Part shown: positions 4,381 through 52,620 of the stretch, in pieces | Numbering within the stretch: position 1 is the stretch's first letter | Layout of the letters: the number at the start of each line of letters is the position of its first letter | Source: Mytilus californianus | Taxonomy: Eukaryota | DNA length: 64,000 bases | Assembly (NCBI RefSeq): GCF_021869535.1 | Contig: NW_026262712.1 | Coordinates: 59,396,001-59,460,000, forward strand | Direction: 5' to 3' | The notes under the pieces: model-generated | Told to the model about the DNA's origin: nothing | The model's database searches: none | What the model saw: the letters and a program-made list of their open reading frames with translations, nothing else | Program-made: the position numbers and the translations under genes

Positions 4381-5863
4381 GTCGAGTAATGCCTTTCCCT
4401 CAGCTGTATATTTATTATATGCAATACAATATAAAAATAATAAAAGACAAACAAGAGTATACCACATCCAACATAAACTTATCCATTATAAACGGGCTCT
4501 CCATCGATAAAAGGTTATGGTGAATTATCTTCAACTGACCCAGGGTGTCGATATTTGATGAATTCACGTGACGTTTCATATATTTAATTCGGTATATAAG
4601 TAATGCTCTGGTGGTCTGTAGTTTCACGTTAAAAATATACTGTTATTCGGGAGAGAGACAAAAAAAAACACAAGCTGTAATAACGTCATCAAGGTTAAAA
4701 TAAACACCAAAATAAAACGTCACTAGTACAAACTTTTTCAAAATTTTCCATAGGCGGTTAAACTCAGCTGGCAGATGCAAATATGCAATTTTAAAATAAT
4801 AATCCCCTTATGTGCGTTCCACTGGCATGCGTCTCAGTGATACATAGGTACGAAATGCTGTTGTAAACTTGTGTTAACTTTTATTCATGCGATAGCAAAG
4901 TAAGTGTTGTAGCTTTTTTTTAGCATAACGAGATTCCGCACTATATGTATTATGTACAATGCCATTAGCATTTAGCATTATTTCTAATTGTAAAATAAAT
5001 TAACATACCATTTTTTAATAATATTCATGATAACGAGAAATTATCGATGTTTTGGTTATTTTAAAATCAATTCTAAGATGCATTTCAAACCTTAAAGAAA
5101 GAGCGATCTGCAAAGACCACTAGAATTTAAAAGTCAAATTTGCTTAGCAGAATTGCAATGACCGTAATTGCTGCCCTAGTAGAAACTGCAATTTATTCAC
5201 TTATTTAGTGATGAGGCACGTGCTACAAGTACTTATCGAATATTATGCTTTTGAGCTTTGTCCGCCTGCAAAAGTATCGATATTTGACATTATATAGAGT
5301 GCTTATGAAATATTAAGGAATTGAATTTCCTATTTGAAATATCTCGCATTGATACACGTCAGCCTTATTTAACCTAATTTTGACTTGACTTACTTTTATC
5401 AATGTACGGTATGTTTTAATATAAAATATGTTAAAGCAGCTCGGAAAGAAACCAACTAAAACAGTCAGCTTGATTTCGTAGATTTGATATACAAATGAGA
5501 TTTACAGTTATTTGCTTTCAAGGAATTCAATTAATGTATATAATGCAAAAAAATTGTAGATTGAAAAATATGGACATTTTAAGACTGATGCAAACTACAA
5601 AAATATTATAAAAAAGAAATTAGGACGTACGGTAAACGCGGACAGACGATAAAAAATTAGTCGCGGTACCCTTTCAGAAGCCACAGTTATGACAAAGAAG
5701 TAATTAGTTGTATTTATACAAGGGTCTTACAATTACTAATTACACTCGTTTAGCATTGTCATCTTGATTTTAAAAACTCATTACCTTGTTTTCAAATAAC
5801 AAAATATCAGTGACAACATATCTTAGAAATGTGTATATCTATTGTAGAGAACTGAAAAGAAGA

Positions 5864-5915: not shown

Positions 5916-7431
5916 GTAAGAAAATCAAAACCTTTTTTTAAATTTAACATTTGATTGTAATTTGTAAATGTGTTTTTCTCTCTCGGAAATATCCTTATAC
6001 ACAGTAAAAAAAAACAGATTGAATATAACATATATAAATGGCTGCTGGTGATTTTTTTTAGTATTCCACTGACAGGAATAAAGTTCTGTATTGACATTTT
6101 TTTGTCTTCTTTTGTTTTTACATTTGAATTCTATACCGTATGTTTTTTTCTGATATGTATGTCAAAATTTTAATTTGTTATTATTTTTTTTCGTCGATTT
6201 CTACAGGAATAATTTTGAATATGAATGAAATATACAATGGGTAATAAGCATATGTAACAGCAATCAAACCAAACAATAGAACAACATCCAGTGATAAATG
6301 TGACCATGCTAATGTTTATTCTGTTAAAATCATTCTCAACGTTGTAATTTAAAGCATAATTATTCATTGTATCTTCCTGTATGTACCTTTGCAAGTCCAT
6401 TGATCGCTAGTACAAGGGGTCGGTTAAAATGAAAACAAAAGTCAAGTTCAACCCCTCCTCTTGGTTTGTCTGTTCCTAGTCACGAACTCACAGTGGTTAT
6501 CACATCTAATTTTTTTATAAACTGAAGACAATTGAGAGCTTCACAGATTGTGAAGAAATCTATCTACTTTTGGAGATTGTATGCTTAGTTCTAGAGGTCA
6601 TTATATGCTCTTGTGTCATCGGGATGATGTATTATTGACGCATAGACAACACATTCTTCCACGTATGTCTTTCTTTTGATTTTATTTTTTCAAGTAAAGG
6701 GATACGAGGATGAGGGGGTGGGAATGAATGAAACCAATACAAAAGGGGGACTGTTCCCTCTTACCTTCTAACCAAAAATAGAATAAGATAAGACCATTAC
6801 ACTACACATGTTTGTTTAAAAAAAGCTCACGATAGTGAGTTAGCTTTTATAAATTATCTTTTTTTAAGTCAGAAACTTCTAATGGTCTTTTTAACAAAAC
6901 GCGTAAAATTGATAAAGTAGCAAAACATAATTCTTAAATAAAATAAAAACTATAGGATTATACCAACATGATCAAAAAACAAAAACATACTTTAAACGAA
7001 CTAGTTTTTTGCGAAAAATTTATTTTCGAGACTCTGGCGAGTAGACAAATAATGCAAACATAAGATGTCGCTAATATGTAAAACTTGGATCTTTCCATCA
7101 GGTAAATTTCAAAATCGCTAAACTAAATCGTCGCAATGTGTGTTCGAAAGGGATAAACGCTAAATAAAATGTCCGCGAAAATAAATTGGATTACAGTTTA
7201 TTGAAAAACTGGTGTACAATTATATAGTTAGGCTTCGCGAGTATATTAAGCTCCGTAGTAAGTGTTTTGGGACTGTCATGATTTATAGCATTCCTTAATC
7301 TAATGCATCGTTGATAAATGTATAAACATCTGCTGGAAAAGTTGACCTTTTGAGAACCTGTTTGAACATATAGCTCATCAAGTATTCAAGTGTGTTTATT
7401 TAAATATTTATCATTTGTCGGTTTGACCGTT

Positions 7432-8399: not shown

Positions 8400-8590
8400 T
8401 CTGCCTTCAACACATAGTCTTGGCTAACACCGAACAGCAAGCTATACGGTGCCCCAAAACGACCAGTGTAGAACCATTCAAACGGAAAAACTAATGGACT
8501 ATATATTCGACTTTTGAAAAACATAATCAAACAACAACCACTAAACAGCAGGTTAGGGCAGATGCAAACAAATGCAGCGGAGTTCAAAAG
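8400..8590 (-). mobile_element. PLE/Naiad-type 3' tail fragment with degenerate 3' half of twister motif
   Basis: Minus strand reads AA-CTCC-GCT-GCA-TTTGTT-TGC-AT-CTG-CCCTAA, then a deletion, followed by the tail shared with 43070-43430 and 56780-56975. Confidence 0.55.
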
Positions 8591-9534
8591 CCCAAATACA
8601 CGAATAATTCTCGAGACTTAAGTGACATTGTTTTAATAAGATCAGAACCTTATATGTGTTAATTTTAAAGCAAAAGATATAAGTTTGTAAGAAAAATATT
8701 GACGTACCAATTCTAATAGCTAAGAAAATTTCCTTTTGCTAAACGATGATAACATTTTAACATTTTGGAATACCTTATAATTCATAATCTATTTCTGAAA
8801 CGACTTCTCGCCTTGAACATGGACGTTAAACAACCATTAATCAATCATTCAAATTGTGCTTTAAAAATGAATTAAGCCGCAAGTGTATCCATCAATGAGT
8901 GATGTTGTTTGTTTGTCCATTTAACATATACTGAATTCGTTTTTGTTCAGAATTATATTCCTTAGAAGAGTTCAAGTATGTAAATAAATTTATAGGGTAT
9001 CATGTGCTAGTTGAAATTTTTCAGTGAAATCAGTATTGTGTGTCCAACGTTCTTTCATGCATATCAAATGTTGTATCCACTTTTTGCTGTTCGTAGTCTG
9101 TTAGTCCTCGGTCTCCAAACTTTAGCACACACTTATGTAATGACCAATCTCGAAAGGGGGAACATTTTTTTTTATTAAAAAAAAAACTAAAACAATTTCT
9201 ATATTCTATTATTCAATTAACCGATGTACACCTAAGATTTTCAACTATAGATGTTGAATTAAAAAAAACAATATTAAGTCCCAATGTATTTTTATGGCAA
9301 ACATATCTAAAGGGTTATTTTCTCATGCAAAATAATTATTTTTTCATTTTTTCAAGATAATAGTGTTACCAGATATGTTCTTTGACACGTGTCTTACGGG
9401 TCACCGATTTTCGGCAAAATCAAAGAAAATCAGCAAGTGCCTAAACATTAGTTTTAAGAATGTTGATGCTGTATTAATATATGGAACATGTCTTCATACC
9501 AAAATATAGTACTCACATTTAATTTTCTTGTAAA

Positions 9535-9682
9535 TGAAATTGGGAATGAATATGGGGATAATGGACGTCATACTCAACTCCGAAATATATAAAAGAAACT
9601 AAACTTAAAAGTATACAAGACTAACAAAGGCCAGAGGCTCCTGAATTGTGACAGGCGCAAAAATGCGGCGAGGTTAAACATA
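9535..9682 (-). mobile_element. PLE/Naiad-type 3' tail with 5'-truncated, mutated twister motif
   Basis: Homologous to 52030-52325. Minus strand reads tgtttAA-CCTC-GCC-GCA-TTTT-TGC-GC-CTG-TCACAATT-CAGG-AG-CCTCTGGCC. Confidence 0.75.
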
Positions 9683-10323
9683 TTCATTTTTTTTTTCGAA
9701 TTGTCTTTTTTTGTGAAATTATTCAGCAACAAATTAATCTATTTATTTTTAATACAATGAAACAAGATTTTTTTTAACGAAATGAAGTATGTTTTCGTCC
9801 CTTATATTTAAAGGAAATAAACAATTTGTCAAAAAAAAAAAAAAAAAAAACTCCGCCCATCCTTCTCTTCACCCCCCCCCCCCTCCCTTCACCCCCCCCC
9901 CCCCCCCCTCCCCTTAAATCCAGAAAAGAATGAATTGACATTTTATTAACAATAAATGTAAAATCATAGATAAACTGCTATTTTATTCTTATTAAGATCT
10001 ACATTTTAACAGATTCGGGGACTAATATTTCTCTAAAAGCCCATGCATACACTAATATTTGTGTGTTTTTTGTTTCAAGTTGTTTCAATTATCATTTACA
10101 TGTATGAGGCTATAAATGGGACCACCATTTATAAGTATATGACTTGGGTTTACAGATTTGAGAATTATGGGGAAACTAAGTTAATAAGAAGCGAGGCAAA
10201 AAAACCACTAGATAACAGAATATAGAGGTGGTGTAACCCGAATAATTCAGTCGTTATATTCCGCTGATCTACGATTACTATATAAATTCACAATTTTATG
10301 AATGTTGACATTGATAGAAATAG

Positions 10324-11475
10324 TTTTTATACGCCCGTCAATTTTTGACAGGACGTTTTATGGTATACAAACGTCCGGTGTCCGTCCGTCCGTCCGTCCG
10401 TCTGTCTGTCCGGCATATACATGTCGCACCGTAACATCAGAACGACTTATCCAAATTTTATGAAACTTAACATAGTTGTTTCTTATGATGGTCAAACGAT
10501 CTGTATACTTTTTGGTGAAAATAAGATTAAAACTTTTTGAGTTACGGGACTTAGTAACTTAAACAGGTGTGTGTTTTTTTTTTTTCATATGTCGCGCCGT
10601 ATCTCAAAACAGTTTATGATTATTGCTTAAAACTTTACACACTTCTTAGTTATATTAATATTAAGATCTGTAGACTTTTTGGTGATGATTCAAAATTTTA
10701 TTTTTGAGTTATTGAGTATTTTGTAAAAAAAAAAGGGGGAGGGGTTTTTCACATGTCGAGCCGTATCTCATAAACGATTTATGATTATTGCTTAAAATTT
10801 TACACACTTCTTAGTTATATTAATCTAAAGATCTGTATACTTTTTGGTTTTGATTCAAAAGTTTATTTTTGAGATATTGATTTATTTTCCTTTTAAAGGG
10901 GGGTTTTCACATGTCGCGCCGTATCTCAAAAACGATTTATGATTATTGCTTAAAATTTTACACACTTCTTAGTTATATTAATCTAAAGATCTGTATACTT
11001 TTTGGTTTTGATTCAAATGTTTATTTTTGAGATATTGATTTATTTTCCTTTTAAAGGGGGGTTTTCACATGTCGCGCCGTATCTCAAAAACGATTTATGA
11101 TTATTGCTTAAAATTTTACACACTTCTTAGTTATATTAATCTAAAGATCTGTATACTTTTTGGTTTTGATTCAAAAGTTTATTTTTGAGATATTGATTTA
11201 TTTTCCTTTTAAGGGGGGTTTTCACATGTCGCGCCGTATCTCAAAAACGATTTATGATTATTGCTTAAAATTTTACACACTTCTTAGTTATATTAATCTA
11301 TAGATCTGTATACTTTTTGGTTTTGATTCAAAATTTTATTTTAGAGATATTGAGTTTTTTGTAAAAAAAGGGGGTTTTCGCATGTCAGGCCGTATGTCAG
11401 AAACTATTTATGATTATTGAATAACAATTCACACACAAGACGACGGGCGTATCATGCGCTCATGGCGTAGCTATT
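10324..11475 (+). mobile_element. DINE-1/Helentron-like (HINE) non-autonomous element with internal satellite-like array
   Basis: Subterminal inverted repeat atacgcccgtc (~10329) / gacgggcgtat (~11442), a (GTCC)n microsatellite at ~10380-10410, a short GC-rich palindrome-like motif and a T-rich end after the 3' subTIR. Confidence 0.75.
10586..11435 (+). repeat. Tandem repeat, ~158-bp unit, ~5.3 copies
   Basis: Unit starts (ca(c/t)atgtcg) at 10586, 10750, 10908, 11066, 11223, 11379, giving periods 164, 158, 158, 157, 156. Confidence 0.95.
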
Positions 11476-16020: not shown

Positions 16021-16915
16021 CAGAGACATATAATACAATTCGGCGTTTTACGTTTCCGCATTTTGGCACTACGTTTCCGCATTAAAATTCTTACGTTTCC
16101 GCATTTTTATAGTACTCTTTTCCGCATTGTTTTTACATTGATTTTATTAAAGGTTATTTACGTTTCCGCATTTAAATTTTTAATGTATCCCCCCCACCCC
16201 CCCCCCCCCCACCCCCCCCCCCCCCCCCCTTTACTCACCAACTGGGTGGAAGTAGGACTTCGAGCAGGATAAGTCTTTATGACTTAAATTAAACTACAAA
16301 TGTATCAACTTAAAATGATAAAAATCACACATGGTCATATATCAATTAAAAGTCAATGTTCAGCACTAAAAGTTTATATATATTTTAAGCGTCAGTATAC
16401 TATTATACAGTACATGTAGCACAGTTTAAAGCGGTAAACTTGTAGCAAACTGACTTTATAAAGTCTAACCTCGCATTCTATTCTCTACCATCCTTGACAA
16501 ACTGTTCGGATACGAATTCAGCACGTTTGCGATCATTTTTACGAACTGATGCTATTGCTGATAAAGACCGAATTTTGATGTAAGTTGTTGTTTGGATCTT
16601 CTGCAAAACGTCCATAAAAATAAATATAATTGTGTGACATGGATAGAACTGGGAGAAACGATTCCGGCCCAGTTGTGGTTCTTTTGGTATCTGTGTCGGG
16701 AGGAGATGACCATATTTGATAATAAAGTCTCATACCGATATATCATTATTACCATTTTTTACAGGTGAAATACAGGTAAAAATGCTGAAAAGTGTACTTT
16801 CCGAAAATCTATTTATTTCGGAAAAGTAATGCACGAAAATGTGGAAACGTGAACTGGATTTTTGCTAAAAATGCGGAAACGATATACACCCATACAATTA
16901 CTATATATGTCTCTG
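16021..16915. mobile_element. MITE with CAGAGACATATA TIRs and 7-bp TSD (P-element-like)
   Basis: atgaaga|cagagacatata ... tatatgtctctg|atgaaga, with subterminal ACGTTTCCGCATT repeats (several at left, inverted at right). Confidence 0.8.
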
Positions 16916-25569: not shown

Positions 25570-26840
25570 GTCGACTATACGTCCACGAGGACATCATAAG
25601 CTCAGTATTCAGTACTTTTCTACTTGTGTTATTTATAATATACCTTTCTAAAATTCATTTATGCATCCCTCACTTACTTTCACAATTAAATGTTCATAAA
25701 TCAAAAATCATTACGAAATTTAGTTTCAAACTCCGGCAAAGCAGGTTTCTTTTCAACATTAAGATATTCATGTATTCATACTTTCAGATAGTTTTATATA
25801 AGCGTTCCTAAATAAGATAACTCAAGTTACATTTGTCTCTTTTCAACTAAATGATATACATCTCCTTCAGAATGTAGTCTCTAAAATATTGACAGTTATT
25901 CAAATCAACTAGTACATATTGCTATTAGTACTATTGCGGTCCTGTAACAAACGATGCAATATGTATGCCAACCTTCAGTAATATGCACAGATATACACTG
26001 ATGTCACCATATTCAACGTATTTATTCTAGTCATTGTTTTGTTGTAGGCTTGTTAAAAGACAGGGATGTAACAAACCATGCAAGAGTATATATAACCATC
26101 AGTGCTGTGAGGGTTGGTATTGCCATCACCGTATATGTGCGCTAATACGTAGCTAGTGAGTTCGGGTATATCCGTTATTTACAGGTCCTAGCAATATTAA
26201 CAGAACCAATGAAATATCATCTGTTTAAATCTGAGACCTGCAAAATTGAATATCAGACAAACTGTGACCAAAATCTGTAATTTTTTTCTGAAGAACTTTG
26301 TTATTGTATTTTATTTTATTTTTTTTTTTTTTTTTTTTTCTTGGAATACAATGATTTCACTTTCAGGAATGGGAGAAGGTATTTTCATGTTGAAAGTATG
26401 TAACGGATTACCCATACACACAGTTCATATTATAATAATAAGGTTCTGGGCTGATATGCATAAAACCGCTTAAGTTAAGATATCCAATCGTAGTATTAAT
26501 CTATCGTACGACATGCAGAAAAATCCGTCCGTTCGCAACAAATCTTCACTTAAGTAGTTTTATGCATATCAGCCCTGCTGCATATGCATTTGTATTTGTT
26601 TTAAGCCTTTAAATGAATACCCAGTTAAAGGCTTTTAAAATAAGGAATTGAGAAGAGGGAACTGAAAGTTACTATACACTGCTTTTCACCATCTATAAAT
26701 GATTAGAAGTTATAAATGAGATCCAAATGAACTGACGTAATAAGCAAAGTAGCTCAAGAAAATAAAACTTTGATATCAATAGGTAGATTGCACAGTTCTG
26801 TTTAAACGCTCATGGGAAGGATAGGATATACGGCAAATAC

Positions 26841-27425
26841 ATTTATCCTGCTGAACTGACTTTAAATAAAGCTAATACTAACAATAAACACTGTCCTTTC
26901 CTAGATCTTGATATCTATATCTTTAACGGGAAAGTTAATACCAAAATTTATGATTAAACAGATCATTTTCCATTACCTATTGTTAATTACCCATTTTTAG
27001 ATGGTGACATTCCATTGTCACTATCTTATGGTGTTTATATATTTCAACTTGTTCAGTTCGCTCGTGTATGTAACAACGTAATTGATTTTAACGAAAGAAA
27101 TCTCTATATTACTGAAAAATTTTTACACCAGGGTTTTCGATATCACAAACTAGTCACAACATTTACTAAATTTTATCGTTGATACAAGGACATCATTCGT
27201 AAATATAAATCAACATGCAGACGTTCAGGTATTTCACATCCAGTCTTTTATGGTAATATTCTATACAAAGCACAAAAATGTCGGCCCTCACCTCAAAAGC
27301 TAACCAAACCTTTAAACAGACTTATTCCGAAGGGATATAGCTACGATACTGTTGTCCGGTCATTAAAGATGGCATATTTTGGTAATAATATTGATTCACT
27401 CATAGGGTCTTAGCATCGGAAATAA
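26841..27425 (+). pseudogene. Penelope-like (Naiad-type) reverse transcriptase C-terminal remnant
   Basis: One frame reads IYPAELTLNK..CPFLDLDIYI..KIYD*..IVNYPFLDGDIP..SYGVYIFQLVQFARVCN..FNERN..QGFRYHKL..FYR*Y.., with three internal stops. Confidence 0.85.
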
Positions 27426-27720
27426 ACACATTTATTTTAAAACCAGTTGTTGGCATGATACGGGTTATGTTCTTCTCATATATTTTATGATGGTATGAAA
27501 CTAAACCCCTAACGGGAGGGATTTTGCTTGATTTTCATATGATGAAGACATAATCTTTCAATCAGTTTAATGAGGTCTGGAGCTGGCATGTCAGTAACTG
27601 CTAGTAGTCCTTTGTTAATGTGTGTACCATTGTCATTTTGATTAGTTTCTTTTGTTACCTTTTTTGACATCGGACTCTGACTTCTTTTAAACTGAGTTTT
27701 ACTGTGCGTATTGCTGTGTC
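27426..27720 (+). mobile_element. 3' UTR of the same PLE, truncated before the twister motif
   Basis: Directly follows the ORF stop and matches the reverse complement of ~52385-52620. Confidence 0.85.
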
Positions 27721-28139: not shown

Positions 28140-29380
28140 ACGGAGACAAAAACACCACAGGGATATTCAAACTCATATGTCGAAAATAATCTGACAACGC
28201 CATGACAAAAAGACAAACACCAAAAGACAAATAACTTTACACAAAACACAACATATATAAAAATGTATAAAGATTAAGCTACACGAACCCCACCTGAACC
28301 TCAGGGTGATACCAGGTGCCGCTAAAGGGTAAGCAGATGTGGCACCCGTCGTATTGCTCATGTAAGTACAAAACTGGTGATAAGTCGTCTTCGGTAGGTC
28401 GTATTCCAGGAAGAAGACCGCATTGAGGGTATGACAATTGGAACATAATCGTCGTAATCTGAAAAACAGAATTCCAGAACAGCCAATCAGTTCGCAATGG
28501 GTCTGTGACATTAGCAAACGGGATGATTCTAATTTCACGACTTGGAACTTTTGATTTAATACCCTCCTTGCGAGCCTCAACCCTCTATCAAGGAAATCAT
28601 GATAGGAATTACAAGCCCTAGAATATCGTATCAACTTGGAGAAATATACACCATATACGGGCGCAGCTTGAATGTTGCTACATTGAAATTGAAAGTTAAC
28701 AATTGGGAAGCTGAGAACCTCATTGTCAATTTAAATATGTAAGTCAAGATATTAGGCAGGTTTAACTGTATCAGTTGTATCCTTCATCTCGAGTTCGGTG
28801 AGATAGAGGTGTTCAACTTAGTCACCAAATTTTGAATTATTTAATCGGAGAACATATTCTATATATCGGAAAGTGGCGTTAAAGGATAATGTTAACTTAT
28901 TTTCTTTCTACCTAAGACGTTTCTGTTTGAAGTCAGCCTCATCTGAATAAAGAAACAAGTCAGCCAGAAGAGGTGAACATTTGGTTACAATTAGAATGCT
29001 GATTGTTTGTTGAATAACACACCCTTTAAACGTAACAAATATGTTGTCAATCGAAAAATCAAGAATCTTGATGATGTCAATTCAAGATGATTTTTTGTTT
29101 GAATCAGAGTGATTATTTACAAAATGATGGCATGGGAATACTTGTGTAAAGTGTGAAAAGGAAACAAGTTTTGTATTTACAATTGCAAAATGAAAGAGTC
29201 TTAGATTGTATAAACTCTAAAAGATCTATAGAATCTTTTAGTATCCACATCTGATTCACGCCACCTCTAGAATATGTTGTTTCACAGGACGGTGTGAAAA
29301 CCAAAATACGTGAATAGCTGTATGACGATAAATAGACCTTAGAGTAATAGCAAAACAAATCTAAGTCTTCTTTGCCAGAG
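28140..29380 (-). mobile_element. Second Naiad-type PLE: decayed RT core plus 3' tail
   Basis: Minus strand NQMWILKDSIDLLE, PLLADLFLYSDEADF, FRYIEY (decayed YIDD, ~28855-28870), ELEMKDTTD, YLDL, IRYSRACNSYHDFLDRG. Non-coding tail at 28140-28400. Confidence 0.85.
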
Positions 29381-31170: not shown

Positions 31171-33472
31171 GATATGTTTTGTATGATGTTAGTTTAGAAT
31201 GAGTACAATACAAAAACAAAACACCAGTATTTTGATAATATCCTTTTCGGCGTATTCGATGATGGAATCAAGTATTTCTTTACAATGTTAGATTTTGCGT
31301 GAACTAAAACACTTAACTGTATCTACCACTATGTGGAATGAGAAGATGTTATGAATATTTATTTCAACATGAAGAGTATAAATTTATAGTGTAAAGATGT
31401 TTAAGAAAAATGATATTATTGCAAACTTGTTATGCTTTTTATTGATATATTTTGGAGTAGATTTATTTAATTTTCGAGAAACCGAATATGATTGGCACCG
31501 CCAGTTAAGTATACATCATGACAATATTTTAACTTCAAAATAATGATGTCAATCGTTTACCAATCTGTTTTCACAATAGGCCTATTTAGACTAAGCCAGT
31601 GTTTGGACAGTGTTCTGCAGTTTTGTGGTTTTCGATGCTCTTCAGCTTCGTTATTTTATTTGGCCTCCGTACTGTTTTGAATCAAGCATGATGAATCCAC
31701 ATTGATATTATTCACAAGATTGAACAAAAACACTTGTACATCATAGAGTTAAAATTAAAAATGTTCTAAAAATACCTTCATGTTGTTAATATGTAACCGT
31801 TGAACTACAACATGTCATGATTTATTTTATTTATTTTTATGCCCAAAACCGAGATCTTTCAGTGACATCTTAAGATTAGTCATATCATATCACGTGGATT
31901 TATACAAAAAAGACATTAAAAGGAGACTAGATAGGAGTACTCTAATAGTGCTACCTGATTCCTGTATTGTGAAGATATTTGCTTGATAATTAGTCCTTAG
32001 TTGTTTGCACTTATAACTACATTTGTGGTGTACATATGTGGTGATGCAAGTCAGATATGTTATTGCCGTATTAGTTAAATCACGAGGCTATCATATGGTG
32101 CTTTGTTAAATTCAATCTCAACTTTGTAATTTTAAGCATAATTGTTCATGTTGAGCTTTGTTGTATCTTTTTATGTACCTCCTCTGCAAGTCCATTGGTC
32201 GCTAGTATAAGGAGTCGGTTGAAATGGAAAAAAAAAAGAGTCAAGTTCCACTCTGCCTCTTAATTTGTCTGTCCCTAGGCAGAGGCTACCAAACTTTGTC
32301 ATATCTAAATGTTTTATTTTTGTTTTTGTTTGTATGTTTTTTTATTTGGAGAATTCCATATTGAACGTAGAACTGTGCTTTTTTCGGTTAGAATCATTCA
32401 CCACATGTATGAACTGCAGACAATTTACAGCTTCTCAAATTGTGAAGAAATATCTGTAAGGGGACCGTAGAAAAAGCGAAAACTAATTGAATAGTATTTA
32501 CAATATCTCTTTTGGTTCGAACTTCTTTTTCTGAAATGAGCTTTATTTGTTCATTAAGTATATTACAGACTCAGATTAAACCCAATTGCCACAGCAGTTT
32601 TTTAAAAGGCTAAGGACGAAGTTGTAAATAATTGTGTGTCACCGTGCGACATTCAACATGGAGTAAAATGTCCGAATAGACAAAATGTGTGACAATTACA
32701 AATCCCTTATAGCTTTCTGTATAATACAACAATAAACGATTAACAACTATGGCAGTCAACAACCGAAGATAACCGTCTTTTGTTCTAGAACAAGCATTAA
32801 AGGTATTTAAAACACACACACTATCTCTACAGTGGTGATTTAATTGAAAGTTCGAACAAACACAGTGAGAATCAGTGGGACAGTGAGCTAGAACTATAGA
32901 AAATTCAAGAAGTGCAATGCCTGTTTATCTTTTAATTACATTTTTAGTGACCAGGTTTTGGCTATACATTCTATTACGGATACTTGTATTCGTACTTTCA
33001 CATGTATCCGTCTAACGTAACACACAAACATTAAGGGAATCGCTTGTACTTCAAAAAGAAAGAGTGACCGGATGTATGCGTCCACAAGTTCTGATCTTTA
33101 AAATGTCGCCCTCGGAAATAGGACACAACCGATATAATATCATCTAAGGGATACATTTTTATATAATGATCACATCTCAATTTATGTAAAAGTAAAGTGC
33201 CATATTTGTTTGTAAAAAGATTTCTAAAGCTATAACAAAATTTTTGAACCAAATTTTTGCTTCAATGAATTAATTTGGTGATGGTGAAATCGCTGATTAG
33301 ATAATTTTCAATGTATACATAGCATGCATAGATAACATTTATATTCTAATAAGAAACTGCCGCGAGAGTGTATTTACCGCAAAAATTCATAAACAAAACA
33401 TTTGGATTTTTGGAGAATTTTTGTCAGGGTAATTCAATAACTTAAACATTGTCTTGATAATTTATCAGTAAA

Positions 33473-34006
33473 TAAAGGCAACAGTAGTATACCGCTGTCC
33501 AATAGTCATAATTCGATTAAGCAAACCAAATCCGGGTAACAAACTAAAATCGAGAGAAACACATCAACTATAAGAGGAAAACTACGGAACAGCAGAAACA
33601 CTGAACTAAATCAAAAGCAAACGCCATCATACATAGAAACGGAATGTCTGATAACAACTGCCATATTCCTGACTTGGTACAGGACATTTTGCGATAAATG
33701 ATGGGTTGAAAATGGTTTTATGGCTAGCCAAACTTTCTGCTTATATGGCAATGTTTAAAAATGACAACACTACGTGACATGAATACAGTACAGACAAACA
33801 CAAGAACACTCAGCACAGAGAAATACATAAATAAATAATATAATAGTACATTACAACATGTAAACAGCAGAATAACAACGGACACCTCTCATGAATTTAC
33901 GACAGCACACCAGGACATCACAAACGAAATATAAACTGTGCGTCACATGAATGGATACAACGTCACAAAAAGTTAAGTATTTTTTGTGACGTTTATATTA
34001 TCACAG
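33473..34006 (-). mobile_element. PLE-type 3' module insertion containing a twister motif, possible GTAAA TSD
   Basis: Absent from the paralog (atcagtaaaacatata at ~44505-44520). gtaaa lies at 33468-33472 and 34007-34011. Confidence 0.75.
33659..33750 (-). ncRNA. Twister ribozyme-like motif, type P5, ACC/UACCAAGU subfamily (degenerate)
   Basis: P5 UGCCAUAU/AUAUGGCA is perfect and P4/L4 reads CCUG-UACCAAGU-CAGG. GAGG has decayed to GAAA and ACC to AUC. Confidence 0.6.
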
Positions 34007-37000
34007 GTAAAACATAGATAACGTTCGCTAAAATCTAAAACTCACTACAGACACGATCATTATTTTCTTTATCTTTCTATATATATTGTAATATTCTCCT
34101 TTTTAGACACTGTTATTTAAAAATCCTCGACTATGTTTTCAACATTGCTTTGCGATACATACACACACAAATCTTTCAATTTTGCCATAAATATATTTCA
34201 TCATGATATAAATTGAAGAAATTGTAATGACATTAGTTTTGCAACTGATCTTTTACTGGTTTTTCGATGAATCTATATCAACGGACTTGTCTCCGTTATT
34301 TTATTGCTTCATTCAATTGAGATATACTCAAATATTGAAATTAATTTACTTCAAACAAGTGTATATGGCAAAGTGACAGCAAACAAAAGTTAGATAAAAT
34401 GCACATCAGTCTACGGACTTCAATTATGGAAAAACTGCATCGGAATCTCGTGCTCGTCTTGTGTTCATGGTGTCTTTGGTTCGATCCTCAGAAAAAGATA
34501 AGCCAAAGAATTCAACATCGGTATGTGTTTCTTTTGGCTATCTGAGCAAATAATGGACGGCTTTGACATGTTTGAGTAAAAATCCGAACATAGCGACATT
34601 TCTGTTTTTTTCAAACGCAACTGTCAGATAGACTTTGTCATCCATAATTAGTAGAAATCTTACGAATAATCTTTGAGTTATGTCCAACATTTTAATTTCA
34701 AGACTCGGTAGTTTTTGAACTTTTACACGGTAAACGTGCATTGGTTTTATAAATTATATAGTCTATTTCATATCCATGTATTTGTTGAAGGACTCAGCAG
34801 TAGAAATGCATAAAATGAGTCAAAATAATATTTTGTTGTGATGACATTTGTAATAGAGAGAGTATAATGATAAAAAAAGTTGTCATTATTAATATTAATA
34901 TTTTATATGTTTACAATAATCGTATTCAAGTTTTATCATTATTATTTTATGTATTTGTATGATATGTTTAAGAATACTTTTTAAAATCATTTTCCTTATT
35001 TATTTGGATAAATGGCTAAATGTATTTATTTGAATAAAATTACCAATTATTATTATGGTACAACATGTACTGCACCAGGTGCATAATTCGACAATAAATG
35101 TATGTTCAACGATCCTCGATGCCTATACGTCAGTATATAGATGACATAACATTGTACCTAGGCTGGAAAATTAAATGTCTTGCATATTTTCATGTAGGTT
35201 GAGATCCGTAATGAGTATAATGCTTATATATTTACCTTTTAAATTCGTATATAACAATATTGTCCATCAAATTAAAATGGTTATCGTACAATAAATTCAA
35301 TCTATTTGATCATCAAAAAATAGTTGTATTGGTATATACGCATGAACCATGTACTTTGACATGTTAAAAGGAAACAATTTAAAATTTCCAATAAGCATTC
35401 AGTCACAGTTCCTCACCTACTATAGTCTGAATTCTGTTCAGGAATATTTTTTTTTTCGGAATTTAATAAAAACAATTACATCATGGATACCAGTAAATAG
35501 ACTTCCTACCTTTTTAAATCTACTATTGTTTGTCTTTTTGTTTTCGTTTCCCTTTATTTTTAAGAGAGTACCCAACACTAAAATAGATTTGTTTCGTTAA
35601 CTTTCGTAAAATGTTTGACTTTGACCTGTTGACAAAAATGTACAAATTTCAAGAAATTTGAACCATGCAATTTACAGGAATAAATTTGTTGGATACATAA
35701 GAATTTGACAAACACTAATTTTGATCACTGGGATTTTTTTTTTCTTTACACATAGTATCTGATTTAAAAGTTTAGTTGATTTTTAAAGATGTGTAGGTGT
35801 ACTGTACCCCCTTAAGTCATGACATGTGAGTCGTTTTTAAATTCATTAAACTTACCTTATGAAAGCTCCCAACTGTTTATTACAATATGGTTTTCTTAAC
35901 TTAAACAATATGTATTATTAGAAAGTAAACATAACAGGAAATTTTAGACGAAATAAATACCTTTTAACTTCATAAATAATATGACATTATATCCAATGCT
36001 AGAAATGTCAGGAGCTGTAAAATAACTTTTACTTATTTGAGGTAAGTAACAGACGTATAATGAATTTGTCATTGACGATGGAAAATTATTCAATTGTGAT
36101 TGTCTCCCATTTAACAAAATTTTTTTTTTTTATTGAAATGCATACGTATGTATGGTATGTGAAATGGATCATATACTAAAGTAAAGATTGAAATATCTTG
36201 CAATCCGGACTTCTCTAGTGGATTATCAACTGACTATTAAAAACAGAAAGCGAGTTATGATGTTTTTATTCTGGTTATAAGGAAGAAAACTTCGAATTCA
36301 ATGGAAACAGATTTAGAGAAACAGGTTGTGAAACTGAATTAGTGCGATGGTTATATTGTTGACTGAACTGTCAGCTTAGGTAAATTCCCTTACCTGGAGA
36401 CATTTTCTAATACAATACTATTTGTTGGTTTCTGATATGTATGTTTACCAGGAAGTTATTTCAATATTTTCATTTTTCTTGTTATTGAGAATAATTTTGA
36501 TTATCATATGTAAATTGCCACATCCTTACTTTTTTATCATATACTTGCATTCAACATGTTCAAAATAAAAGAAAAGTAGAGCAAGCATTTCCAAGAGATA
36601 TTGAAAATCAAAAATACTGAAGACATACTATATTCTTTTTACTAATATAACATAATTTGCGTTCCTGAAAAAGGATTTAGTCACTATTATGCTGACTATT
36701 TATAGAATGTTAGTGTTTTCTATATCATATACGGTCGTCATACGGATCGTAATCGATAGCATGGGTCCGGAATGTTTGAATCTTTTGTTGGATTCATCAT
36801 TTTACACGGTAGCTACACTAACAATTAAAAATTAAACAACAAACAATCTCAAATACGTTTGATGTAGTTAAGTCCTCCGGAAGGGATATTTGTTCCTTCA
36901 CCATTAGTTATCAATTGATACACATTTCTGGGGTTAATTCAATTGTTTTTCTTTTTCTTTTTTTTTTATACTCTGTTATTTGTTATTTTGATAATTTTCT

Positions 37001-37804: not shown

Positions 37805-38142
37805 ATATAAATAAGAAGATGTGGTATGACTGCAATTGAGACAGCTTTCCACAAGAGACCAAACGACACAGAAATTAACAACTATAGGTCACCGTACGAC
37901 CTTCAACAATTAGCAAAACCCATACGCATACTCAGCTACACATGGCCCCGAAATGACAAATGTAAAACAAATTAAACGAGAAAATAAACGGCCTAATTCA
38001 TGTACAAAATAATGAACGAAAATCAAATATGATACACAGCAACAAATGACAACCACTGAATTACAGGCTCCTGACTTGGGACAGGCACATACAGAATGTG
38101 GCGGGGTTAAACTAGTTTGAAGACGCCAACCCTCTGCTAACC
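37805..38142 (-). mobile_element. PLE-type 3' tail; twister motif at its 5' end (38052-38142)
   Basis: Minus strand AGCA-GAGG-G-UUGGCGUC-UUC-AAACUAGUUU-AA-CCCC-GCC-ACAU-UCUGU-AUGU-GC-CUG-UCCCAAGU-CAGG. Core is intact but the P2 partner is damaged. Confidence 0.75.
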
Positions 38143-38821
38143 ATTCTTGCTACGAAGATTTATTTTCAAACAGAAATGTATCATACTTCGAGAAAGTCTG
38201 TCATACATTTCGTGATATTACGTATGTACAATGTATATTATATAATGAGACTTTAAGTTACGTAGAAAATGAATAAAACGTGCCACAAAGTGAGAAATTT
38301 TTGAATTTCTGAATCAATAATGAAACTAATAGACAGGCTATAAATTTCTGTTGAACCAGGGTTATGTCAAAGAAGTCTCGTCCTTTTTCTAAAAAACGTT
38401 AATCAGAAGAAAAAAAGACCTTGTTGCTAAATATTGCGTATCAACTTCATAAATAATACACGATGGTCTTGAAGTATAGATTCTAGTGACTGACGTTGTT
38501 TATCATCTTCATTACGTGTTATATTGTTCTTTTATTTGTCATTGTAAATTATTAACCTTTACTGTTTAGTTCATTTTTTGGTAATATCATTTTGGCGTGG
38601 TTCGGTACTTTTACATCCCGCCATTGTGTTATTGTGATATGGTATTTTTTTGGTATTCTTGTCTTTAATTTTTGCTTATGTGACATATTTGTATGTTTTT
38701 ATAGTGAATAAGATTATAACACAACGTTGACTGCTCTTCTCCTATTTTTGAACAGTTTTACCTATTATGTCTGTTTGTTTTGTTCACACATTGTTGTCAA
38801 TATAATGGAATTTTATGCGAC

Positions 38822-38906
38822 TTTCATACAAGTGAGATGTTTAGCTAGCTATAAAACCAGGTTTAATCCACCATTTTCTACATAAGGAAATGCCTGTACG
38901 AAGTCA
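38822..38906 (+). ncRNA. Twister-like motif, ACC subfamily, 3'-truncated and mutated
   Basis: GUGA-GAUG-UUUAGCUAGCUAUA-AAACCAGGUUU-AA-UCC-ACC-AUUU..AAAU-GC-CUG-UACGAAGU-CA. Confidence 0.55.
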
Positions 38907-39439
38907 TTAATGTGTTTAAGCTTTAGATTTTGCCGTTTAATAAGGCACTTTCCGTTTTGGATTTTCCTTGGAGTTTGGTATTTTTGTTATATTACTTTTT
39001 TCTACCGAATGTAGCATCTCGATTTATCCTCATACAATAAATACTGCTTTTAACTGGCCCTAAGTGGTTTAAGTGAATATAAATTTCGAGGCCTAAGTTC
39101 ATCTCTGGTTTCCGTAGCTTTCGTGTTGCTAAGTATTTAGTTTTCTATTATATTTTGGAAATTGATTTTTGTCCTCTCATTGTTATTTTGGTTATGATAT
39201 TGACAATTTTTATAGGACTTTCAAATATTTCATTTGTACTTTGTCTTGTATTACAATAAAAAATAAGACACCTATGTAAATATTCAAATCAGACGACTCT
39301 TATGGAAGCTTACTACTTTAGATTGTGATAACATCACTCTTTTGAGTTGAAACAAAGTTATATTGTAACTGTCAGCAATTAGCGAAGGTGACTGTAGAAT
39401 TATTAAAACTTCGATTTTAGTCGTTCGTCTACATAATCA

Positions 39440-39770: not shown

Positions 39771-40231
39771 ATCTGCAATTATAATGCAATATTAATTTTC
39801 TGGTAACATGTTTGTTTATTCTCAGTTGACCATGTGCACATGGTAATAAAGTCGCGAGTCGTCATATCGTCACATTGAATTGCTAGATTCAAAAAACATC
39901 GATTAATACAATATAATCGCATATGAAACAACACATACCTCAATAAATCGTTCTAATGACATATTACCAAATATATTTCGTACAGATAACAGAATGACCT
40001 TGAGTTTCAAGGTTTTTATTGTATGACATCATGTAATATCTCATTGTTAGTAATGAATTAAAATGACTAACAGTACTGTAGCTGACGTGTTGCTGCATAT
40101 TCTTTAAATGATTTGAAACAAAACTAAGCTAAGTTTGTATGAATTATGTTTCATATGCGCACAAAAACAAGGCATTAAGTAGGGGTGTACGATAAGTAAT
40201 CATTGAAATACAAACTCTTTGTTGATAATTA

Positions 40232-40490
40232 ATTAAACCAGGTTCAACCCACCATTTTTTCTTAAAATATCCTATACCAAGTCAGGATTATGGCAGTTGT
40301 TATCAAATAGTTCATTTCTATGTGTGTTGGCGTTTGTTTTTGTTGCACTTCGGTGTTCCTGGTGTTCATTTGTATTTCCTCTTATAGTTGATGTGTTTCC
40401 CTCGGTTTTGGTTTGTAGCTTGGATTTGTTTTCTCTCAATCGATTTATGACTTTTGAACACCGGTATACTACTGTTGCCTTCATTGAAAT
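40232..40490 (+). mobile_element. PLE-type 3' tail starting with a 5'-truncated twister motif (40235-40295)
   Basis: AAACCAGGUU-C-AA-CCC-ACC-AUUUU..AAAAU-AU-CCUA-UACCAAGU-CAGG-A-UUAUGGCA. The tail ends in cggtatactactgttgcct like the 33473 insertion. Confidence 0.7.
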
Positions 40491-43069: not shown

Positions 43070-43430
43070 GAAGATGTGGTATGAGTGCCAATGAGACAAC
43101 TATCCATCCAAGTCACAATGTGTAGAAAGTAAACAATTATAGGTCAAAGTTCGGCCTTCAACACGGGACCTTTGCTCACACCGAACAGCAAGCTATAAAG
43201 GGCCATAAAAAGACTAGTGTAAAACAATTCAAACAGGAAAATCAACGGTCTAATCTATATAAAAAAACGATAAACGAGTAACACTTATGAACCACACCAA
43301 CAAACGACAACCACTGAAAACAGGCTCCTGACTTAGGATATGTGCATAAAACTGAAGCGGTTTTAAACGTTTTAACAGGCGCCAATCATCACCCTAACCT
43401 GAAACAGTGGTGTAACATTACAACATAAAA
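43070..43430 (-). mobile_element. PLE-type 3' tail with degenerate twister motif (43310-43411)
   Basis: P5 ACCACUG/CAGUGGU and AGGUU/AGCCU are retained. Core has decayed (AAACGUUU-AA-AACC-GCU..UCCUAAGU-CAGG). Confidence 0.7.
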
Positions 43431-43894
43431 AGACACACAATAACATATCTATCGAAACGGTTTTACTTGATCAAAAAGACAATACACAAAAACAAGTAAA
43501 TATTTAGTCTTTTAGTCAATTTAAGACTTATCAACTGCGGTAACTTTAACAGTGTTCAGGAAATTCGCTTGCAGTCAACTAAGAAATATTTATTCTATGT
43601 TCAGACTGTTCAGTAGTTGCAATTTACTTGTAGACTTCAACGTCATACCCAATTATCTGAATATATACCGAACTGTATCGAATTGATTTAAAGCGAATTC
43701 ACTGAAAAGTACTGAATTTAACGCAGCAGATACGTCAGAAAATTGACTGAAAGACTGAAAATGATAAATCAACTAATTGTTCAGGCTTTTCAGATGATGT
43801 TAAGTTCAACATGATCGCTAACATGGCTAAGGACTAAAATTAATAGTGTTTTATTTTCTGATGGAGGTGAAAATCAGTTAGTTGCAACATTTCG

Positions 43895-45140
43895 GATAAT
43901 TTATTTCGTACTTTCACATGTATACGTCTAACGTAACACACAACAATTAAGGGAATCGCATGTACTTCAAAAAGAAAGAGTGACCGGATGTATGCATCCA
44001 CGTCCGATCTGCAAAATGTCGCCCTCGGAAATAGGACACAATCGATATAAGATATTATTTAAAGATAAATTTTTAAGAAATGTTGCGCCAAAAGTAAATT
44101 GCCATATTTGTTTGTAAAAAGATTTCTAAAGTTATAGCAAACGTTTTGAACCAAATGTTTGTACCAATGAATAAATTTGCTGATTGTTTTAAAGTTTTTA
44201 ATGAAATTGCTGAATAGATTATTTTCCATTTATACAAAGCATGCATAGATAACATTTATATTCTAATAAGAAACTGCAATCAAGAGTGTACATTTGTAGC
44301 TCCTTTGACATGGAATAAAAAAAAAAATTCTAAATTAGTTCTAAAACTATGTAATTAAGACCGCCTTAAACAAAAGCATCTTTACGTGATATCAAATTTG
44401 GTTTAAGATTTGTATCGCACAACTTCATATTAAACAAAACCTTTGGATTTTTAGAGAATTTTTTTCAGGGTAATTCAGTCACTAATTCATTGTCTTGATA
44501 TTTTATCAGTAAAACATATATAACCTTCGCTAAAATCTAAAACGTCACTCAAACACGATCATTATTTAATTTATCTTTCCGTATTGTAATATTCTCCTTT
44601 TTTAGACATTGTTACTTTTAAATCCTCGACCAGGTAGCGCGTCTGTATAAATTTCTCTTTTTATTCTTGATTTTCAACAATGTCTTGCGATGCAGACACA
44701 CACAAACCTTTCAAATTTGCCATAAATATATTTCATCATGATATAAATTGTTGAAGTTGTTATGACATAAGATTTGCAATTGATCTTTTACCGGTTTTTC
44801 GATGAATCTAGATCAACGGACTTGTCTCCGTTATTTTATTGCTTCGTTCAATTGAGATATACTCAGATGTTGAAATTACTTTACTTCAAGCAAGTTTATA
44901 CGGCAAAGTGACAGCAAACTAAAGTTAAATAAAATGCACATCAGTCTACGGACTTAAAGTATGGAAAATTGCATCGAAATCTCGTCTCGCCTTGTGTTCA
45001 TGGTGTCTTAGATGCGATCCTCAGAAAAAGCTAAAACAAAGAATTCAACATGGGTATGTGTTTCTTTCGGATATTTGAGCAAAGAATGAGTGGCTTTGAC
45101 ATGTTTGAGTAAAATAATGCGTCCGAAAATGGCGACATTT
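43895..45140 (+). repeat. Segmental duplication copy 2 (empty-site paralog of 32985-34700)
   Basis: Collinear with copy 1 apart from the 534-bp insertion and small indels. Confidence 0.9.
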
Positions 45141-48783: not shown

Positions 48784-49020
48784 TTGATATTTTCAGAATT
48801 TTAACTATACTTTCACAACAACAATTTGTTGCTCCAATTTAACATGTTCAATGTATCTGATTTTGTTTTTTATTCGTTTACATTAAAAAAGAAACTTTTA
48901 AGGTTAATTGGCCCTTTCACAACTGACGAATTATTAAAAGGGGATTAGAAAAAAATATGAATAGGTCAGGTTTTTTTAATTTTATTTTTGTTTTGAGTTT
49001 ATTTTTTCACTGTGTATAGT

Positions 49021-49315
49021 ATTGTCACATTCTTTATGTGCATGTCACAAGTCAGAGCATGAAGTACAGTTGTGGTCGTTGGCTCGTGTCTGTCATATTG
49101 TTTTTCGTAAATTATTTTGTTATGAATTAGATCGCTAGTTTTCTAATGTGAATTGATTCACCTTTTCATGTCGATGGCCTTTAATAGACGACTATACGGT
49201 AATGGGTTTTTGAATGTTGAATGCCGTACGGTGGCCTATAATTGCTAACTACCCCTTCATTTTTACTCTGATGGATAGTCTCATTGGTAATCATACCACA
49301 TCTACTCAGTTTTAT
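49021..49315 (+). mobile_element. Old PLE-type 3' tail starting inside a degenerate twister motif
   Basis: GUC-ACAU-UCUUU-AUGU-GC-AUG-UCACAAGU-CAGAG, then a tail ending gtctcattggtaatcataccacatct. Confidence 0.6.
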
Positions 49316-50844: not shown

Positions 50845-51290
50845 TTTCTGTTAGATGTATGTCTACTTTGTATCCATCTGATAAATTAAGCCCTTTTCAA
50901 CAGATTTTTATAGTTTGTTCTTATGTTGTACTGTTATACCACTGTCCCAGGTTAGGGGAGGGTTGGCGCCTTCAAACTAGTTTAACCCTGCCACATTTTG
51001 TATGTGCCTGTCCCAAATCTGCAGGAGCCTGTAATTCAGTGGTTGTCGTTTTTTGCCGAATATGATATTTGTTTTTCGTTCATAATTTTGTACATAAATC
51101 AAGCCGTTAGATTTCTCGTTTGAATTGTTTTATATTTGTCATCTAGCGGCCTTTTATAGCTGACTATGCGGTATAGGTTTTACTCATTGTTGAAGGCCGT
51201 ACGATGACCTATAATTGTTATTTTTCTGTGTCATTTGGTCCTTTGTGGAGAGTTGTCTCATTGGCAATCATAACACATCTTCTTATCTTA
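50845..51290 (+). mobile_element. PLE-type 3' tail containing a near-complete twister motif
   Basis: Same family as 37805-38142 and 43070-43430, ending gagagttgtctcattggcaatcataacacatcttc. Confidence 0.8.
50938..51043 (+). ncRNA. Twister ribozyme-like motif, type P5 (L4 disrupted by a small indel)
   Basis: ACCACUG..AGGUU-AGGG-GAGG-G-UUGGCGCC-UUC-AAACUAGUUU-AA-CCCU-GCC-ACAU-UUUGU-AUGU-GC-CUG-UCCCAAAUCUG-CAGG-AGCCU..CAGUGGU. Predicted scissile bond 50983/50984. Confidence 0.7.
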
Positions 51291-52029: not shown

Positions 52030-52620
52030 AATAAAATTGAGAATGGAAATGGGGAATGTGTCAAAGAGACAACAACCCGACCATAGAACAGACAACAGCA
52101 GAAGGTCACCAACAGGTCTTCAATGTAGCGAGAAATTCTCGCACCCGGAGGCGTCCTTCAGCTGGCCCCTAAACAAGTATATATACTAGTTCAGTGATAA
52201 TGAACGCCATACTAAACTCCAAATTGTACACAAGAAACTAAAATTAAAAATAATACAAGACTAACAAAGGCTAGAGGCTCCTGACTTTGGACAGGCGCAA
52301 AAATGCGGCGGGGTTAAACATGTTTATGAGATCTCAACCCTCCCCCTATACCTCTAGCCAATGTAGAAAAGTAAACGCATAACAATACGCACATTAAAAT
52401 TCAGTTCAAGAGAAGTCCGAGTCTGATGTCAGAAGATGTAACCAAAGAAAATAAACAAAATGACAATAATACATAAATAACAACAGACTACTAGCAGTTA
52501 ACTGACATGCCAGCTCCAGACTTCAATTAAACTGATTGAAAGATTATGTCTTCATCATATGAATATCAGGCACAATCCTTCCCGTTAGGGGTTTAGTATC
52601 ATACCATCATAACATATATA
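52030..52620 (-). mobile_element. 3' end of a Naiad-type PLE (5'-truncated) containing the best twister copy
   Basis: Overlaps the 3' UTR at 27470-27720. Terminus is ggtcgggttgttgtctctttgacacattccccatttccattctcaatttt. Confidence 0.85.
52269..52359 (-). ncRNA. Twister ribozyme, type P5, near-intact (one C>A in L4)
   Basis: GGCUAGAGG-UAUA-GGGG-GAGG-G-UUGAGAUCUCA-U-AAACAUGUUU-AA-CCCC-GCC-GCA-UUUU-UGC-GC-CUG-UCCAAAGU-CAGG-AG-CCUCUAGCC. P5 9 bp, P2 4 bp, P3 and P4 all pair. Predicted cleavage between 52316 and 52315. Confidence 0.8.

Follow-up and report, generated by a model that had tools for sequence, protein, structure and literature searches.

A probable type-P5 twister module in the 3′ untranslated region of Naiad-type Penelope-like retroelements of Mytilus californianus

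We analyzed a stretch of 64,000 nucleotides from Mytilus californianus (NCBI RefSeq assembly GCF_021869535.1, contig NW_026262712.1, positions 59,396,001 to 59,460,000 of the forward strand), which is called the window throughout. At positions 52030–52619 the minus strand of the window carries a young, 5′-truncated tail of 590 bp which appears to derive from a Naiad, a type of Penelope-like retroelement. Within this tail, at 52269–52359, lies a small structured module. An earlier note, made from the letters of the window alone, had read this module as a type-P5 twister ribozyme embedded in the 3′ end of a retroelement. Our analysis suggests that the module is probably a twister-class RNA with the element order of type P5, that it is located on the sense strand in the 3′ untranslated region (UTR) of the Naiad, that is, in the region of the pseudo-long terminal repeat (pseudo-LTR), and that intact copies are predicted to cleave themselves.

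The module and its predicted fold

Read on the minus strand, the 5′ half of the module at 52269–52359 is GGCUAGAGG-UAUA-GGGG-GAGGG-UU-GAGAUCUC-AUA-AACAUGUU-U^AA, and the 3′ half continues after U^AA with CCCC-GC-CGCA-UUUU-UGCG-CCUG-UCCAAAGU-CAGG-AG-CCUCUAGCC. The helix P5 is formed by its 5′ strand GGCUAGAGG (52351–52359) and its 3′ strand CCUCUAGCC (52269–52277), which covary among families. In P2 the 3′ strand GGGG (52343–52346) pairs with the 5′ strand CCCC (52310–52313). The sequence GAGGG (52338–52342) is the 3′ strand of L1. The catalytic G is presumably its first nucleotide, and G3 to G5 pair with L4 in the pseudoknot T1. Two palindromes follow, GAGAUCUC at 52328–52335, in the place where P1 is expected, and AACAUGUU at 52317–52324, immediately 5′ of the scissile U. 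The U^AA occupies 52314–52316 and aligns to the UAA of the Rfam Twister-P5 consensus; the predicted scissile bond is U52316/A52315. Further downstream are the L2 sequence GC (52308–52309), which pairs with the two final bases of L4 to give the pseudoknot T2, the P3 hairpin CGCA-UUUU-UGCG (52296–52307) and P4, CCUG/CAGG around the L4 sequence UCCAAAGU (52280–52295). The elements thus appear in the order P5, P2, GAGGG, U^AA, GC, P3, P4 and L4, which is the order of a type-P5 twister. On re-reading the minus strand we arrived at the same parse that the earlier note had given.

The minimum free energy (MFE) fold of 52269–52359 on the minus strand contains P5, P3 and P4. With -37.8 kcal/mol (z = -3.5) it is more stable than the folds of 200 out of 200 shuffled sequences. 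An alternative pairing in the MFE fold, GGGUUGAG/UUUAACCC, was dropped because other families do not have it. We also considered the UAA directly after the first palindrome as an alternative cleavage site. It was rejected, as this triplet is CAA in family B and polymorphic within family A (the two families of genomic copies are described below).

In this stretch the window copy is only one base apart from young genomic copies (L005). The difference is a C to A change in L4, from UCCCAAGU to UCCAAAGU, with A52288 in place of the C of the young copies. The change is uncompensated, GAGGG being kept, and the T1 pair 30:113 (G:C) is broken. Apart from this single lesion the module is complete. It is matched with 111 bits (52258–52368, minus strand) by R1, a covariance model which was built from 13 genomic copies and used to search the window and the loci of relatives, and its intact genomic counterpart is aligned end to end by the Rfam model RF02684.

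Covariation and an invariant core

Base pairs were counted in a model-made alignment (A4) of 22 matches, 20 of which are distinct, for the inner four base pairs of P5, for P2, P3 and P4 and for both pseudoknots. Since the nested helices guided this alignment, it is biased in their favour; the pseudoknots lie outside of the model and are the cleaner test. Among the 20 distinct sequences 94.2% of the cells pair, versus 73.9% after shuffling and 31–45% with the 3′ partners slid; none of 500 shuffles reaches the observed value, but since the aligned sequences are related the shuffle counts are not probabilities and independence is overstated. In 17 of the 21 pairs changes are found on both sides.

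For the single helices, pairing amounts to 98.7% in P2, 98.7% in P3, 96.2% in P4 and 85.3% in the inner part of P5. Fourteen of the 16 pairs in these helices are changed on both sides, including three of the four pairs of P2 and all four pairs of P3. P2 occurs as GGGG/CCCC, GGGU/GCCC, GUGG/CCAC and UGGA/UCCA, and P4 as CCUG/CAGG, ACCG/CGGU and AUCG/CGAU. P2 and P4, together with P3 and P5, are found in type-P5 order.

The pseudoknots covary as well. T1, between L4 and GAGGG, is paired to 89.7%, with compensatory changes in two of its three pairs. The pair 30:113 is G-C in 16 sequences and A-U in a family with GAAGG/UCCUAAGU (L053, L054). In L046 the same pair is U-A (GAUGG/UCCAAAGU), that is, the L4 change from C to A which is seen in the window copy is compensated there. 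The pair 32:111 is U-A in L052 (GAGGU/UACCAAGU). T2, between the GC of L2 and the end of L4, is paired to 95%, and its pair 62:117 is G.U in 14 sequences, A-U in three, C-G in one and U.G in one. The register of the T1 and T2 pairs is assumed from complementarity and from the structure of the Osa-1-4 twister.

Among the 20 distinct sequences no variation is seen in the first two nucleotides of GAGGG (G and A), in the two A that follow the scissile nucleotide and in the AAG of L4. UAA is found in 19 of them, the scissile U being a C in one family only. The invariant positions include what we take, from the Osa-1-4 structure, to be the catalytic G and A. In their core nucleotides (U^AA, GC after P2, YCCAAG in L4 and GAGGG) the modules agree with the Rfam consensus and with published twisters of Schistosoma mansoni (PMC8501958). 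Several of the compensatory changes fall in different families and samples. The fold, consisting of P2, P3, P4, P5, T1 and T2, is maintained by selection across Naiad families and samples.

It could be argued that the likeness to twisters is a chance similarity within an abundant multi-hairpin repeat, as copies within one genome descend from few masters and no Rfam match anywhere attains the gathering level. We consider this highly improbable. The same order of elements is kept in families whose flanks are unrelated and in retroelements of other samples with 48–75% identical reverse transcriptases (RT), and both twister-specific pseudoknots as well as four helices contain compensatory changes. 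The covariation of T1 and T2 in particular contradicts a chance origin.

Abundance in the genome and similarity to Rfam families

The core of the module is very abundant. The pattern TAACCCCGCC-N8-20-CCTGTCCCAAGTCAGG has 13,280 exact matches in the 1.65-Gb genome, versus 0 matches for the reversed control, a frequency far above chance. Intact copies, which the earlier note had predicted to exist elsewhere in the family, are present in the genome.

When 96 nt of an intact copy were compared with the 4,227 Rfam families, the only meaningful match was RF02684 (Twister-P5) at L005:1471–1537 with 23.1 bits and E = 0.0024, the gathering threshold being 37.6. The alignment spans model positions 1–58, and GAGGG, UAA, GC and GUCCCAAG match the consensus. 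P3 is handled as an insertion and all 20 positions of P1 are skipped. As is visible in this alignment, the score stays below threshold because P1 is absent and P3 is extra. The alignment of the intact copy, the genome-wide core and the covariation together bear out the twister reading and its type-P5 permutation.

The retroelement that carries the module

Thirty loci around exact core matches were compared and fall into two families, A and B. The common part of the two families is only the module of ~85 nt, with 79–85% identity, and the flanks are unrelated. In the alignment of family A the 5′ ends are variable and there is one fixed 3′ end, ...CCATTCTCAATTTTA. Target-primed reverse transcription typically leaves ends of this kind. 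Longer copies of family A enter an open reading frame (ORF) with the RT motifs DFSTLYTTLPH, GIPMGTNCAP and RYLDDIL. This ORF is present in more than 100 genomic copies at 98–100% identity, some of which are arranged in tandem with a period of 4,020 bp.

The full unit of 4,020 bp was read in locus L045 (G000:C13:18886000–18895999, minus strand). The frame begins after the last stop other than TGA and contains four in-frame TGA and no other type of stop before the final TAA. N-terminal to the RT motifs we recognized by eye a GIY-YIG-like motif, IIYLLT*NKPGCGIQYVGETGR...RTQEHL (IIYLLT*NKPGCGIQYVGETGRYLSKRTQEHL), and the ORF also has a DKA motif, PADKAANNIIIV (FVFVPADKAANNIIIV). Two of the in-frame TGA are located within the GIY-YIG-like motif and one after the DKA motif. 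An element similar to the Rfam family SECIS_1 (selenocysteine insertion sequence) is found 55 nt after the TAA stop, with 31.7 bits in young copies and 28.1 bits in the window copy (52556–52618, minus strand) against a gathering threshold of 35. The in-frame TGA codons and the SECIS-like element suggest that the main Naiad family is a transposon coding for a selenoprotein. From the stop codon to the twister module the distance is ~330 nt, and ~285 nt separate the module from the 3′ end of the element. The family-A tail in the window, 52030–52619, reaches from the SECIS-like element through the 3′ end and corresponds to positions 3431–4020 of the L045 unit with 98.98% identity (blastn).

Tails of family B directly follow remnants of a related RT, which are 47–69% identical to the RT of family A. 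Family B is therefore a second, older Naiad family. Two further remnants in the window belong to this context. At 26835–27713 (plus strand) there is a Naiad RT fragment which matches the last part of the family-A RT and its SECIS region with 87% DNA and 82% protein identity and ends before the twister, and at 28530–29078 (minus strand) a more distant Naiad RT remnant with 38% protein identity.

Naiads were defined by an N-terminal GIY-YIG domain, a change of DKG to DKA and a length of 3.4–4.4 kb (Craig et al. 2021, PMC8557442). According to the same study they dominate bivalve genomes and no canonical hammerhead ribozyme was found in them; a twister is unmentioned. Some Naiads of clams and spiders code for selenoproteins; they have UGA in frame where Cys is otherwise conserved, and their stop codon is closely followed by a SECIS (PMC8557442). 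The RT of Penelope-like type, the length of 4,020 bp, the tandem arrangement and the 5′-truncated copies of our element agree with this description. The closest ESM Atlas clusters to the ORF are eukaryotic HTH_animal, RVT_1 and GIY-YIG proteins. Neither the window nor any of 20 tail-bearing loci had a match to a hammerhead family at E <= 10. The conserved domains of short interspersed elements (SINEs; MESC, V and Meta) were considered as the identity of the common module and dropped, as the copies are tails of RT-coding elements. The retroelement context claimed by the earlier note is thus correct and can be refined to Naiad-type Penelope-like elements.

Relatives in other samples

A search with the RT piece gave 3,239 homologues at E <= 1e-10. 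For eleven of these, with 48–75% RT identity, we examined the contigs, which stem from five other ENA samples including a Tara metagenome. At nine of these eleven loci R1 finds a module 220–720 nt downstream of the ORF, and at two (L051 and L055) there was no R1 match. In L049 two identical modules, at 203–313 and 4777–4887, lie upstream and downstream of one Naiad ORF, as is expected for a pseudo-LTR arrangement. In L047 two modules, at 5460–5570 and 6305–6415, are placed 845 nt apart downstream of one ORF and have different first palindromes (AGGUACCU versus AUGGCCAU). Contigs from public runs, whose status as RNA or DNA is uncertain, contain the sequence in four organisms, with diverse flanks after the 3′ end of the element.

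Evidence on self-cleavage

By structure the module is a type-P5 twister which departs from this class in two respects, the Rfam gathering score and P1. These two departures and several other observations weigh against a self-cleaving twister of a Naiad. No twister family was found, either at the gathering threshold or at E <= 10, in the window, in 171 nt around the module or in 20 loci with an intact core. A search of the whole genome with Rfam families (E <= 0.001), in which only 79 of ~36,000 candidates were scored, also returned no twister. The gathering threshold is reached neither by the intact copy nor by the window copy, which has no match at all; the check by covariance model that had been proposed in the earlier note thus supports the twister with a weakly significant E value for the intact copy and fails for the copy in the window. 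Between GAGGG and U^AA there are 21–22 nt without any helix in cis, and the canonical P1 is absent, which the earlier note had overlooked. To this comes the relatedness of the aligned sequences mentioned above. As to the host element, searches of Pfam and PDB with pieces of the ORF, including the GIY-YIG-like piece, gave no informative match, and the assignment to the Naiads rests on motifs read by eye, the architecture and the description in the literature.

A genomic footprint of cleavage is likewise not clearly apparent. If cleaved 3′ fragments were reverse transcribed, one would expect more tail copies to begin at the scissile bond than next to it, and we used this as a proxy. In the counts, which rest on samples of copies and from which indel variants were removed by eye, double-mismatch patterns yielded ~19 truncated copies starting at A(+1), ~12 at U(-1) and ~10 at A(+2), without a clear spike. 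Patterns with a single mismatch gave 199 counts at position -1 versus 89 at -2, the excess being mostly due to a subfamily with a U-to-A or U-to-C substitution. Furthermore, insertions are primed at the 3′ end of the element, downstream of the module, and the template RNA therefore has to keep its 3′ module uncut. Cleavage thus cannot be complete. The need for an uncut 3′ module fits a conditional rather than a constitutive ribozyme.

Among the copies of family A we noted a subfamily in which the scissile U is changed to A (GUUA^AACCCC; AAA in L1), for example in L058, L060, L062 and L065. By extrapolation from samples it comprises roughly 100 copies, and it recalls the AAA "T-variants" of S. 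mansoni.

The two palindromes are 6–10 nt long each and covary in such a way that they remain self-complementary. The first is palindromic with other sequences in other families and was found as GAGAUCUC, GAGCGCUC, GGGAUCCC, UGGCGCCA, GGGCCC, GAGUACUC, AGGUACCU, AUGGCCAU and AGGAUCCU; the second, whose variants keep their self-complementarity too, as AACAUGUU, AACUAGUU and AACCGGUU. Even the central four bases are self-complementary, namely GAUC, GCGC, GGCC and GUAC in the first and CAUG, CUAG and CCGG in the second palindrome. A hairpin loop would not need this. The linker folds with 0 to -3.9 kcal/mol as a monomer in every family, and for the homodimer -8 to -20 kcal/mol are predicted. These features hint that two modules pair with each other, but dimerisation of the RNA for some other step would account for the palindromes just as well.

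The missing P1 might be without consequence if the module were a monomeric ribozyme active in cis, for which P1 is dispensable. The palindromes would then serve as a small hairpin, as a site for a protein at the DNA level or for other RNA pairing. All the remaining elements of the fold are indeed complete in cis. In addition, the S. mansoni study reports that twisters cleave, although inefficiently, without the P1 stem and that variants with a mismatched P1 are active (PMC8501958). We nevertheless regard a purely monomeric ribozyme as rather doubtful, since the self-complementary centres of both palindromes would be superfluous in a hairpin loop and the monomeric linker folds near 0 kcal/mol.

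Another explanation is that the fold derives from a twister and does not cleave any more. It would be kept for recognition by the RT in target-primed reverse transcription, or for dimerisation or packaging of the RNA via the palindromes in the manner of a retroviral dimer initiation site. Such a role would agree with the absent P1 and the sub-threshold Rfam score, with genomic copies that show no pile-up of starts at the scissile bond and with the uncut 3′ module needed by RNAs which are reverse transcribed from the 3′ end of the element. Also the palindromes predict strong dimers whatever the catalysis. However, the nucleotides that never vary are the presumed catalytic ones (G and A), the AA and the AAG of L4, and a purely structural role would not obviously need them. 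The inefficient cleavage without P1 reported for twisters (literature cited in PMC8501958) also speaks for retained activity. We therefore think that a non-cleaving fold is unlikely and that a twister-class RNA with predicted cleavage is the probable explanation.

Possible mode of action

The copies in the window are tails only, 5′-truncated or decayed, which target-primed reverse transcription left behind. For a twister of this kind the following scheme can be imagined. Intact copies would cleave themselves between the U and the A of U^AA. The active form would probably be a pair of modules, contributed either by two RNAs or by a single tandem transcript with its two pseudo-LTR copies. If both copies were cut, RNA of unit length would be released, which is also the role suggested for the hammerhead of other Penelope-like elements. 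As a tentative extension, possible though speculative, we suggest that Naiads use a pair-dependent twister. Pairing of the palindromes would license the cut and free a unit-length RNA, which might be ligatable to a circle, and lone tails within host transcripts would stay uncut.

Other copies and repeats in the window

The earlier note had listed nine further copies of the module in the window. Eight of these are recovered by R1, and the one at 8537–8590 is only marginal (8528–8636, minus strand; E = 0.44), possibly a very decayed remnant. At 50934–51045 (plus strand; 105 bits) there is a family-B module with P2 AGGG/CCCU, P3 CACAU/AUGUG and P5 CCACUG..CAGG/CCUG..CAGUGG. An insertion damages its L4 (UCCCAAAUCUG). 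Three more copies belong to family B. The copy at 38050–38163 (minus strand; 79 bits) is 5′-truncated in P2/P5, its core from U^AA to P4 is intact and its L4 is UCCCAAGU; the copy at 43308–43415 (minus strand; 66 bits) is old and decayed; and the copy at 48980–49075 (plus strand; 36 bits) is 5′-truncated at P3. A family-A copy at 9618–9721 (minus strand; 43 bits) is 5′-truncated at the second palindrome and has a decayed L4.

A third family is represented by a decayed copy at 33648–33761 (minus strand; 25.5 bits) with L4 UACCAAGU, the cleavage site CAA and P5 GCCAUAU/AUAUGGC, which is similar to the module in L052, by another decayed copy at 38813–38929 (plus strand; E = 0.006) and by a weak match to a 5′-truncated copy at 40206–40302 (plus strand; E = 0.17). 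One doubtful match, at 32188–32304 (plus strand; E = 0.06), is additional to the list of the earlier note.

All copies in the window are damaged or 5′-truncated, and four of them (38050, 9618, 48980 and 40206) are truncated inside the module. The statement that every copy has a lesion therefore holds, the lesions being the base change in L4, the insertion in L4, 5′ truncations and decay. The covariation that had been named for the window is real too, with P2 CCCC/GGGG versus CCCU/AGGG and P3 CGCA/UGCG versus CACAU/AUGUG, and three differing P5 helices are indeed found among the window copies, each of which pairs.

Some other repeats were observed in the window. At 10419–11436 a 158-bp unit is repeated in tandem about five times (families D1, D2 and D5); this array is unrelated to the twister repeats. 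The segments 32973–34581 and 43889–45114 contain collinear direct repeats with 88–92% identity at a spacing of ~10.5–11 kb (D3, D11, D12, D15, D19 and D20), which points either to a segmental duplication or to another long repeat that is present twice. Long poly-C tracts (D7) are located at 9853–9928 and 16189–16244.

Comparison with known systems

We regard the module as a variant of a ribozyme class that is already known, found in a new and biologically telling context. A search of the literature gave no paper which ties a twister to Naiads, to Penelope-like elements or to molluscs, the list of ~2,700 twisters from 2014 being outside of this search. Canonical Penelope-like elements carry a hammerhead, and its reported lack in Naiads had been read to mean that a ribozyme is dispensable for Penelope-like elements or a mere parasite of them. 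If our interpretation is true, this reading would be reversed. Penelope-like elements would in general require a self-cleaving RNA for their life cycle, and two unrelated classes of ribozymes would serve this need. The module would also be the second context for the twister class in animals, after Perere-3 in Schistosoma, and a natural twister without P1 in cis which would allow a direct test of the dependence on pairing.

Hammerheads of Penelope-like elements and minimal variants of them that cleave as dimers were reportedly described by Cervera and de la Pena in 2014 and by Lunse and colleagues in 2017. These hammerheads are located in the pseudo-LTRs, and the minimal variants cleave as dimers (reviewed in PMC6765202). 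Common to both systems is a ribozyme motif in the terminal repeat or 3′ region of elements arranged in tandem, and further a helix which is too short in cis and a self-complementary sequence in its place, which suggests action as a pair. The two systems differ in the class of the ribozyme.

To the selenoprotein-coding Naiads (PMC8557442) our element is similar in the GIY-YIG-like and DKA motifs, the length, the very high copy number in bivalves, the in-frame UGA and the SECIS-like element. In contrast to these, where no ribozyme is reported, a twister module follows the SECIS-like element in the Mytilus Naiad.

With the type-P5 twister (RF02684, clan CL00120; Roth et al. 2014) the module shares the order of the elements, the core nucleotides, the pseudoknots T1 and T2 and an alignment from end to end. 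Different are the two covarying palindromes, which replace the P1 hairpin in cis, the score below the gathering threshold and the host, which is an animal retrotransposon. Furthermore, L4 ends here with U or G instead of C, so that the T2 pairs are G.U, A-U, U.G or C-G.

Twister variants are also known from the 5′ end of the Perere-3 (RTE) non-LTR retrotransposons of S. mansoni (Liu et al. 2021, PMC8501958). They are likewise an integral part of an abundant retrotransposon, and their core, UAA-P2-GC-P3-P4-GUCCCAAGC-P4-...-P2-GAGGG-UUGG, is very similar to that of our module, including the UUG(G) after GAGGG. The Perere-3 twisters, however, are of type P1 and are found at the 5′ end of a long interspersed nuclear element (LINE) of the RTE type, where the target-site duplication supplies P1. 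The Mytilus module is of type P5, is closed by P5, resides in the 3′ UTR of a Penelope-like element and carries palindromes instead of P1.

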